Source of the DNA: Pelomyxa schiedti
Lineage: Eukaryota; Protista; Evosea
DNA length: 47,565 bases
NCBI GenBank assembly: GCA_020536535.1
Contig: JAHLWZ010000920.1
Location: 1 to 47,565, forward strand
Direction: 5' to 3'
This document shows, piece by piece, positions 29,771 to 33,013 of the stretch. The position numbers were made by a program, and so were the translations under genes. The notes beneath the pieces are model-generated. The model did no database searches, was not told the origin of the DNA, and saw only the letters and a list, made by a program, of their open reading frames with translations. Position 1 is the first letter of the stretch. Every line of letters begins with the position of its first letter.

Positions 29771-32700
29771 ATGGCGACGAAGGGGTCACGAAACGTGCCT
29801 GCCAAGTCGACGACGCCACCGCCGGCGGCGACTCCCACGTCCACGACAACAACCACAACTTCTTCTTCGCCGGGAGCCACGAGCACGGCGTCGGGGTCGC
29901 TCAGCGCGTCGGGGGGCGTGACTGGTGCAGGCGCTGCCCAGGATTGTGGGATAACACTCACGATCGAGAAGTTTGCCAAGAGAACGGAAACCAAGGTCCG
30001 AAGCCCTGTGTGGAATAACGAGGGTTTGCAATGGTATTTTCGCCCCCTTTTTGTTTGTTGGTGTTGTGTTTCGTTCGCTTGTGGATTTGGTTTTTTTTTT
30101 TTTTTTTTTTTTTTTCTTCAAGTTTTGAAGAAAAATCTTTCCTGTGGTGGTTTTTTTTTTGTTTACATTTTTCTGTACAGGAGATTGAAGGTGTTCCCAA
30201 AGGGGAACGACGAAGAGGGTTGGATATCGGCGTATGTTGAGCTTGCTAACGCTGGTGAATTGCCTACTCCTTGGTCAGTGGAATGCCGGTGGAAAATAAC
30301 ACTGGTGCACAACGAAGACAAGTCCAAGTCAATTGAAAACAGTTGCGAAACTTGACCATTTCTACCTAGTCGCTTATGTGATCATTTTAAAATTGTCAGA
30401 ATTTAGATATACGTTTCAGCACGAATCAGACACACTGGACTGGGGTTTTAACAAATTTGTGGATTTCAAAGTTCTTCAAGAAGACCGAAACTTCTTCAAC
30501 AAAGGCGGCGCACTCACCTTTAAAGCGAATTTACTCTCTGCTGTTGTGACACCTCCACTGAGTATTTATTCCTCAATGGAGTGCAACTCACATAGAAATT
30601 CAGTTGTCAAAGTTAAAGTCTTCACGGAAAAAGACTTCTTCACACACAAGCTTGCAGACCTGATGGATGTCGATAATAAGCCTATTTCCTTCAGTGTTTC
30701 GAACAACGTTTCCTGCACCACACTTACTGTGCACTGATTTCCTTCGGTTTTTTCGTTACTCATTTTCATAAGGCTCGTGTGTCCTCATTTCTCAACATTG
30801 GAACGAAATGCTTCAGATTGTGGCGAATGGTGAGAAGAAAAAATAAAACAACTAGACCCCACGAAGTAGTAATGGAGAAGGAATTACTTAGGTGTGGACA
30901 CTTTTTTGTTCGTTTTATTAGTAACACAAAAACCCTTAGAGTAATGGCTGGGGAACTACTTCTTTTTGCGGAATGCTGTGAAGCACCTCCCCAACCACTT
31001 CCTCAGGTAGCTTCAATCGTACTGCCTACCCGTAACATGCCATAAGTATTATGCAGCTTTCCCACCGCTACCAGCAATTCTCATCTTCTTGAAATATTAC
31101 GATCCCCTATTCAGACGCCCCTGGTAGCATAAAATACTTTGCCTCATTATTCATGTATCCCAGTTATGTCGGGTCTCTCTATCTCGATCCTCTAGATTCA
31201 CTTAAATCCACCTCTCCAAAATTGCGCCAACTTGTTGGTTTACCAACGGACGCTGACTTAACTTTTTACGAGGTAACCTAAAGGCCAATAAACTGAAACT
31301 TAAGTCTAGTCTTAGGAAATTACCCCAACTAACATCGAAGTTCTGGATGCCAACAAAAACTTCAAGCAAGCCGAGCTCGTTTCTGGAGGTAAGCTTGCTC
31401 ACATATTTCAATCTGAGTCCTGTAGATGTAATTGTATATCAATCCAAGACTCTGAAAACACACAAATTGGCATCAGCATATGACTGGTATATGCATGCCA
31501 ACAACCATGTAACAGTCAAATTCGTGTATGACGCAGAAGATTCACCTCCCACTGCAACAGTAGACACTGCCCTCTCTTTTTCATTAAAGATGCATATTTT
31601 TGCATCAAAAGCACGAGTGCTTGAAAAAGTAGCTAAGAAGCTTGGAGAGATCAATCCTGAATCTTTGCTGTTACGAGACAAGAAAAAAGAGAAGCCATTG
31701 TGAGCTTTCACAGACGCTTTTTTCCCCCTTTAATAAACCAGAGGTCGGTACGAAACATTACAGGATATGCTTCTGGGTGCTGATGGCAAGGTTATCTTTT
31801 TTGAAGTTGTTGGATTTACAGAAGTGAAACTCAAAACTTTGATGCTTGTGTGCCCTCTTGTATTATATTTGAGTTTTTCTCACCATTGGTACAACTAAAG
31901 CAAAAGGCGGCCATTGACGAGGACTTGATGTGTCCTGCCTGCAAAAAACCTCATTCGACTCCCATGACTCATACCTGTGGGGCTCTTGTCTGCAATTCTT
32001 GTTTAAAGGTACCTGTTTAGCAGCTTCCCCCCCCTCCCCCCCACCTTCCATAGGAAATTTGCCCAGTGTGCAAGGTCTCTATTACACGAGATTCGATAGT
32101 GCGTGCTCCTGCTGTTGTTGAAAGGCGATTGAGTGCTTTCCACATATCCTGCCCAATTTGCAGTATGAATATTTCTCTTAGAGATTTGGAGGTCCACAGA
32201 AACGAATGCTTTATAGGTGTGCAAATTTCATGCTTACTTTTTTTTTTTAAAAAAATAATCAACAAAGATTGTCCTAGTGGGTGCAGTCTACCCGTTCTTG
32301 TCCACAACCAAAGTGAGCATCAAAGTATTTGTGCAATGAGTGCTGTTACTTGTGCCACTTGTGGTGTGGTTGTAAGGAGAGGGCACAAGATAACTCATCA
32401 CTCAAGGCGCTGCATTTCCCGTACCACTCCGCACAGTTATTTCTTTTCCCTGATTACCATTACCCCAGCATGTGCCAACGCCGGCTGTTCCCAGAACGTA
32501 GTACCAAATGGCCAATCGAAGCACGACATCGACTGCGCATTCAAAACAGTTCCCTGCCCTCAATGCGGGATGCCTATAACTACATCCATGCTTAACAAGA
32601 AGACTCCCCACTGCCAACGTAATTCATATCCCCAATATCTCCCCCCCCCTCCCATCCCCTTCTCTCTTTCTCACACAAACCCAAAAATACCAAAAATACA

Positions 32701-33013
32701 CCCAAAAATAGTGTGCACGGCATGCGGGCTCATGGTCGAGATATCGTCGATGGCGCGGCACGCCTCGCAGCTGTGCGCGGCCACCGAGGTGCCGTGCGAC
32801 TCGGCCGACACGATGCCGTGCACGTGGCGCGGGCCGAGGGGGAAGCTGCAGGACCACACCCGCGGCTGCATCTACAACGGCCTCAAGCACGTGCTGTCTC
32901 CGGTGGCTGCGCGGGAGGCCAAGGCAAAGGCCATGCTGGCCGCCGCTGAGCAAGAAAATCTGGCCCTCAAGGCCAGAATAGCAGAACTACAACAGAGGCT
33001 CTCTTCGTTGTGA
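29771..33013 (+). CDS. USP7-derived chimeric protein: MATH, USP7-type UBL1-3, RING, TRAF-type zinc fingers and coiled coil (no USP catalytic domain)
   Basis: MATH: WRLKVFPKGN...DWGFNKFV. UBL: FRLWRMVRRKNKTTRP, ILIFLKYYDP, FYEEI, ELVSGDVIVYQ, VLEKVAKKLG. RING: DLMCPAC...TCGALVCNSC...CPVC. Then TRAF fingers and a coiled coil, all joined by GT-AG introns. Confidence 0.85.

Follow-up and report, generated by a model that had tools for sequence, protein, structure and literature searches.

What function can be expected of a protein that carries the substrate-recognition scaffold of the deubiquitinase USP7, has lost the protease, and continues into a RING and a series of TRAF-type zinc fingers? The question is raised by a gene at positions 29771-33013 on the plus strand of a 47,565-nucleotide stretch of Pelomyxa schiedti DNA (contig JAHLWZ010000920.1, here called the window), whose product of 803 aa, encoded in 16 exons, is annotated at NCBI as 'hypothetical protein Pelo_14174' (P0001 in the following). 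A sequence-only reading of the window had described this gene as a USP7 scaffold turned into a putative E3 ligase, and all the peptide strings on which it relied are found at the positions that it gave.

The gene is real and it is expressed. The model spliced from RNA junctions is one open reading frame of 803 codons with 15 GT..AG introns (37-147 nt), and it is identical to the database protein P0001, which was retrieved with an exon-level query (32054-33010) and on which the full-length analyses were then run. The RNA contigs belong to one single-cell RNA-seq study, to which three runs (X1, X2 and X3) contributed, and the P. schiedti assembly comprises 52.4 Mb in 5337 contigs (PMC8887013). 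Overlapping RNA contigs tile positions 30204-33011, and 14 of the 15 introns are confirmed by joints across 30341-32712; exon 1 and the predicted intron 1 (30034-30180) lie outside the RNA cover and are based on the NCBI model and on residues 59-87, which are homologous to the opening strand of the USP7 MATH domain. Intron 11 (31848-31900; 53 nt, phase 0) marks the point where the USP7-derived part of the gene passes into the TRAF-like part. Its joint, 31847>31901, occurs in runs X2 and X3 and brings the exon that closes the UBL region next to the one that opens the RING; the shorter flank of the joint measures 66 letters. A contig from another run overlaps the joint and reaches 33006, taking in the exons of the RING and the zinc fingers. 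The two canonical introns that had been predicted to lead in frame into the RING are thus seen in RNA, as the joints 31847>31901 and 32008>32054, and the former ties the UBL and RING halves into one spliced mRNA, which contradicts the alternative of separate transcripts.

Several irregularities in the RNA contigs deserve a comment. Logan contigs stop at 31921 and at 31966, which could be taken for transcription starts internal to the gene; this possibility was rejected, because the loose ends are the sequence of the Smart-seq template-switch oligo, to the 3' end of which the genomic CCCATG at 31966 is complementary. These stops are library artefacts, not transcript ends. An apparent joint 32618>32818 ('GT..CC') was likewise rejected as alternative splicing, since it resolves into the normal acceptor at 32712 and a 105-nt deletion bounded by direct repeats of GTGCACG (32713-32719 and 32818-32824). 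Within 32712-32825 this deletion is present in one X1 contig, the other runs covering the full exon; it is in frame and removes 35 residues, about one zinc finger. Probably it is an artefact of reverse transcription or assembly in GC-rich sequence, a deletion allele being the alternative. Finally, at 30341-30407 run X3 takes an acceptor 7 nt downstream (30407 instead of 30400), which shifts the frame and leads to a stop at codon 189, and this form is therefore non-productive.

The nucleotide sequence itself is uneven. The GC content is 0.62 in the first exon (29771-30033) and 0.66 in the last exon (32712-33013), against 0.39-0.52 in the 14 internal exons and 0.38 in the introns. The depth of DNA contigs falls in the last exon, and the DNA contigs of run X4 break at a long poly-T tract (30077-30126) within intron 1. 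Eight of the 15 introns (30034-32711) have a length divisible by three; positions 32054-33010 read open through three introns without a stop, and intron 3, if retained, would add 14 in-frame residues.

The first 58 residues, including the start codon (29771-29944, in exon 1), form a low-complexity region rich in Thr, Ser, Ala and Gly with pLDDT below 50, which lies outside the RNA cover and agrees with the NCBI model. They are followed by a MATH domain (residues 59-184; 29945-30527) spread over exons 1-3, which are separated by introns at 30034-30180 and 30342-30399, the latter confirmed by the RNA joint 30341>30400. Pfam assigns MATH_2 to residues 62-184 (E 1.9e-19). The best PDB match of the domain is USP7 (E 1e-6; aligned human residues 69-192), followed by SPOP (2e-5), and the list of PDB matches contains no TRAF MATH domain. 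The DWGF motif of the groove is retained at residues 155-158.

Downstream of the MATH domain the protein consists of an 11-residue linker, the USP7 UBL1-3 region (195-512), the RING (523-554), about seven TRAF-type zinc fingers and a long C-terminal helix. Human USP7 (full length, 9plr_C, E 1.7e-18) aligns with it in two blocks, residues 69-192 with 59-183 and residues 563-800 with 195-420; therefore 11 residues of P0001 stand in place of approximately 370 residues of USP7 (193-562), which include the entire catalytic core. In agreement with this, P0001 has no Pfam match to UCH (PF00443), and none of the genome's 119 UCH matches is located on this contig (C920). USP7_C2 (PF14533), which covers UBL4-5 and the C-terminal activating tail, also has no match in P0001, and the PF14533 matches of the genome are confined to contig C72. 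The UBL1-3 region (30604-31847, exons 4-11) gives exon-wise matches in profile order, with all joints present in RNA, and USP7_ICP0_bdg matches residues 251-471 with 125 bits (E 3.8e-36); together with the colinearity with human USP7 563-800, this bears out the USP7 identity that had been proposed for the three UBLs. When the largest UBL exon was compared with PDB by phmmer, no match was obtained, and the full-length protein and Pfam profiles were needed. In the acidic patch of UBL2 (USP7 D758, E759, D762 and D764) two of the four acidic residues, the second and the fourth, are kept.

At the site of the absent catalytic core lies intron 3 (30562-30603; 42 nt, phase 1), which is spliced out in runs X1 and X2. 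The MATH domain had been thought to run into UBL1 within a single exon (30400-30730) that leaves no room for a USP core. The stretch in fact comprises two exons, and the absence of the core stands; with intron 3 removed the gap between MATH and UBL1 shrinks from about 20 residues to about 10, which makes the argument stronger. The full domain set that had been expected is recovered by Pfam in part: MATH and USP7_ICP0_bdg are found and UCH is absent, but the RING and zf-TRAF models remain below their cut-offs.

The same genome also contains an intact USP7, on contig C72, where UCH is followed by USP7_ICP0_bdg and then by USP7_C2. The introns of that gene, inferred from the sequence as GT..AG, can be compared with those of the P0001 gene. 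Three of the latter (3, 4 and 7) coincide with C72 USP7 introns in position and phase. Intron 3 corresponds to the intron before UBL1 (L007 6674-6719; phase 1, within a codon that lies ten residues ahead of the conserved 'DFF'), intron 4 to an intron inside UBL1 (phase 0), and intron 7 to the intron before 'Y-[VM]-G' (phase 2); introns 5, 8 and 9 have no counterpart in the C72 gene. The best PDB match of the MATH domain, the colinear UBL1-3 and the three shared introns support the derivation of the N-terminal 512 residues from USP7. The coincidence of intron 3 with the pre-UBL1 intron suggests that the catalytic exons were removed by an intron-to-intron deletion. On the 5' side, the C72 intron after MATH (phase 2) and the end of exon 3 (phase 1) are 4 nt apart, so that homology is approximate here and exact at the 3' side of the deletion alone. 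A simple exon-skipping origin, with no further adjustment, is unsupported, as the 5' side differs by these 4 nt and in phase. The switch from UBL3 to RING also occurs at an intron (phase 0). The simplest reading, judged from gene structure, is that a USP7 gene was duplicated at the DNA level, that the catalytic exons of the duplicate were lost by a deletion from one intron to another, and that it gained the 5' half of a TRAF-like gene through a further intron. Besides the C72 gene, a second gene with UCH and USP7_ICP0_bdg is present on the minus strand of contig C810 (106732-109047, L008), which may be a USP7/USP47-like paralog.

The gene is a member of a small family. On contig C866, exon peptides are colinear with it over the whole series of MATH, UBL, RING, fingers and helix, and the encoded protein P0002 (KAH3745578.1, 813 aa) has the same Pfam layout, with all 15 introns at matching alignment columns. 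A third copy, on contig C214, shows the same junction between MATH and UBL1 and the same RING; the passage from UBL to RING is kept in the C866 and C214 copies alike. Outside Pelomyxa, a 5'-partial transcript of the archamoeba Mastigella eilhardi (P0003) contains the UBL-to-RING junction, the MATH and core region being outside the sequence; the fusion is therefore older than the split between Pelomyxa and Mastigella. The search for the same architecture in other genomes, which the sequence-only reading had proposed as a check, thus has a positive outcome for the UBL-to-RING part. An exhaustive HMMER search with the C-terminal half against 1.84 billion representatives returned 41 matches, and among those scanned the USP7 UBLs occur only in P0001, P0002 and P0003. 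P0001, alignment A1 and the UBL region by itself also served as queries for word-indexed protein searches, which returned the query and one ordinary USP7 only; they missed a known paralog and are uninformative on distribution. A scan of metagenome contigs with alignment A1 gave no relative, and the clusters obtained from the ESM Atlas by features were all generic (ubiquitin-like and RING/TRAF) and below 0.9. In the papers searched, no description of such a protein and no co-occurrence of both Pfam domain names was found. The combination of MATH, UBL1-3, RING and zinc fingers appears to be undescribed; the architecture is a variant assembled from known modules.

The RING (residues 523-554; 31931-32071) is split by intron 12 (32009-32053) and was recognized by alignments, by a PDB profile and by fold. 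The profile built on alignment A2 finds TRAF6 (5vo0, 3e-8) and LNX2 (1.2e-7) in PDB. A model of residues 508-660 (three-sequence alignment, pLDDT 79) resembles the RING and zinc fingers 1-3 of TRAF6 almost from end to end (3hcs_A, E 1.6e-9, 154 columns), the next fold matches being TRAF5/6, LNX1/2, RNF125 and TRAF2. By profile and by fold, the RING and TRAF-type fingers that had been claimed for this half are accordingly TRAF6-like. No RING model of Pfam reaches its cut-off on P0001, the zf-C3HC4_3 model scoring 20.4 bits against a cut-off of 27 bits. The pattern of the domain is C-x2-C-x9-H-x-C-x4-C-x2-C-x4-C-x2-C, with Ala540 in the position of the canonical His, where it aligns with the His ligand of TRAF6 as had been noticed before, and with Ala525 in the E2-contact position. 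Order and spacing of the zinc ligands therefore depart from C3HC4 at Ala540, and an alternative candidate set of eight ligands includes His536. In all three members the canonical His after Cys-Gly is replaced (Ala, Glu, Ala), and in all three His536, located two residues before the third Cys (Cys538), is invariant together with seven Cys, which gives eight candidate zinc ligands; the Pro of the last C-P-x-C pair is also retained. An upstream His combined with loss of the canonical one is further found in plain RING/TRAF-finger genes on C464 and C807, in the C214 copy and in three database proteins. Its presence in plain TRAF-like genes suggests a working RING variant, one with a relocated ligand, rather than decay, and His536 probably compensates for the absent canonical His.

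The E2-contact position, two residues after the first Cys, is less favourable. RINGs that bind E2 usually have Ile, Val or Leu in this position, and in well-studied RINGs its replacement by Ala disables E2 binding. P0001 lacks a bulky hydrophobic residue here, carrying Ala525, whereas Val is found in P0002, P0003 and the copies on C214, C464 and C807. In view of this residue, ligase activity of P0001 is putative, though plausible.

The RING is followed by about seven zinc fingers of the TRAF/Sina C2HC type (residues 581-756; 32150-32869) in exons 13-16, the joints of which are present in RNA. This region matches TRAF6 (5vo0) with E 8.6e-7. The zf-TRAF and Sina_ZnF models of Pfam are below cut-off, Sina_ZnF with 17.8-22 bits against 32 bits. 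The full-length AF2 model has low confidence (pLDDT 61.5, three-sequence alignment) and was used for secondary structure only, where it shows about seven beta-beta-alpha fingers. The protein ends with a long helix (residues 746-802; DSSP, pLDDT 73-84), which with the stop codon occupies 32837-33013 and is covered by an RNA contig over 32735-33011. The helix is a probable coiled coil. No TRAF-C (MATH) domain follows it, the sole MATH domain being N-terminal and of USP7 type.

What function, then, could such a protein perform? Its anatomy, expression and origin follow from the evidence above, whereas client binding, E2 binding and ligase activity are inferred. On the favoured reading, an intron-bearing duplicate of USP7 gave rise to a small Archamoebae family after losing the exons of the catalytic core between the post-MATH and the pre-UBL1 intron, and its UBL4-5 were replaced at an intron by the RING/zinc-finger/coiled-coil half of a lineage-specific TRAF-like gene. 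The USP7-type MATH groove, in which DWGF is kept, and perhaps also UBL1-3, would bind client proteins, the TRAF6-like RING/ZnF module would recruit E2~ubiquitin, and the C-terminal helix would oligomerise the protein. P0001 would in this way ubiquitinate proteins that bear USP7-type docking motifs, either as a RING-type E3 or as a subunit of one, its clients being recruited through the MATH groove. We favour this reading with moderate confidence, and several features are counted against it: the RING scores below the Pfam cut-off, the canonical His is missing, Ala525 occupies the E2-contact position, and the acidic patch of UBL2 is half eroded.

In the explanation that we rank second, the RING of this copy folds and does not engage an E2 by itself. 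P0001 would then be a non-catalytic adaptor or partner, a TRAF-like scaffold or the inactive half of a RING heterodimer with a paralog, and would deliver clients of USP7 type to a different ligase or to a signalling complex. Ala525, where all related sequences have Val, and the RING scores under the Pfam cut-offs speak for this explanation, the fold matches include RING heterodimers of TRAF5/TRAF6, and three paralogs coexist in the genome. Its appeal is reduced by the retention of all eight candidate zinc ligands and of the Pro of C-P-x-C, and by the resemblance of the fold to active RINGs that were solved with E2s (TRAF6-Ubc13 and RNF125-UbcH5b); we regard it as possible and rather doubtful. 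Third comes a decoy or competitor of USP7, in which the protease-free MATH and UBL surfaces sequester clients or partners and the C-terminal half serves for oligomerisation or localisation only. The precise loss of the catalytic core from a protein that keeps the DWGF motif, in a cell that has an intact USP7, would fit such a role; a decoy, however, would have no use for an invariant set of RING ligands, nor for some seven zinc fingers that three paralogs in two genera have conserved, and we consider it improbable. A truncated USP7 copy merged with a neighbouring TRAF-like gene by annotation or assembly is effectively excluded, for although none of the RNA contigs extends over the entire gene and a contig is no proof of a single molecule, the GT..AG joint between the halves occurs in two runs, overlapping contigs tile 30204-33011, the reading frame is continuous, and the same layout recurs at two other loci and in the Mastigella transcript.

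The ligase reading has a stronger form, in which these proteins constitute a natural 'anti-USP7' and would be active E3s that read USP7 docking motifs with the MATH and UBL domains of USP7 itself and use a previously unrecognised RING subtype with a shifted His. This form is speculative, and we think it unlikely. If it were true, a writer and an eraser of ubiquitin with one common reader would be present in the same cell. 

If P0001 is active, its family and USP7 would be rivals for one set of docking motifs and form a built-in on/off pair of ubiquitination, and the family would offer a route to the clients of USP7 in an anaerobic lineage that has been little studied. The protein would be a clear natural case in which the substrate-recognition scaffold of a deubiquitinase is re-used by a ligase module, with a genomic mechanism that would still be readable, both loss and fusion lying at intron boundaries. 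The RING with a shifted His, which an expanded TRAF-like family of this amoeba shares and which Pfam misses at curated cut-offs, would also widen the sequence definition by which RING ligases are detected.

Comparison with known systems shows how the modules have been rearranged. Like USP7/HAUSP (peptidase C19, MATH-USP-UBL1-5), P0001 has an N-terminal MATH domain with DWGF, colinear UBL1-3 and three intron positions, with their phases, in common with the organism's own USP7; unlike it, P0001 has neither the catalytic core nor UBL4-5, keeps two of four residues of the acidic patch, and has the RING, zinc fingers and helix at the C-terminus. SPOP (a MATH-BTB adaptor of CUL3) and TRIM37 (RING-B-box-CC-MATH) follow the same logic, a peptide-binding MATH domain tied to ubiquitin-ligase machinery, and neither is derived from USP7. 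SPOP, whose MATH domain is the second-best PDB match to that of P0001, has no RING and uses its BTB to recruit a cullin, whereas TRIM37 differs in domain order and lacks UBLs. SIAH1/Sina likewise combines a RING with a substrate-binding domain of MATH fold, and shares with P0001 a compact RING whose final Cys pair follows after a short spacing, a string resembling 'G-x-L-V-C-x-x-C' and weak Sina_ZnF matches. Membership in SIAH/Sina was nevertheless rejected, because Sina_ZnF stays below cut-off and the C-terminal substrate-binding domain of SIAH is absent; the fold match is also weak (9g0l, E 2.9e-3). With TRAF6 and the TRAF family (RING-zinc fingers-coiled coil-C-terminal MATH) P0001 has all four types of module in common, including a RING and zinc-finger array that is followed by a long helix. 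The order, however, is permuted, with a USP7-type MATH domain at the N-terminus, an internal RING and three UBLs between them; the C-terminal TRAF-C is missing, and the His ligand of the RING has moved upstream of the third Cys.

Plain genes of the RING/TRAF-zinc-finger type form an expanded family in P. schiedti, with 38 exon-level matches to the C-terminal half of P0001, among them genes on contigs C464 (L012), C807 (L011), C966 (L010) and C559 (L013). In those inspected, on C464 and C807, the RING is of the same variant type, its His preceding Cys-Gly.
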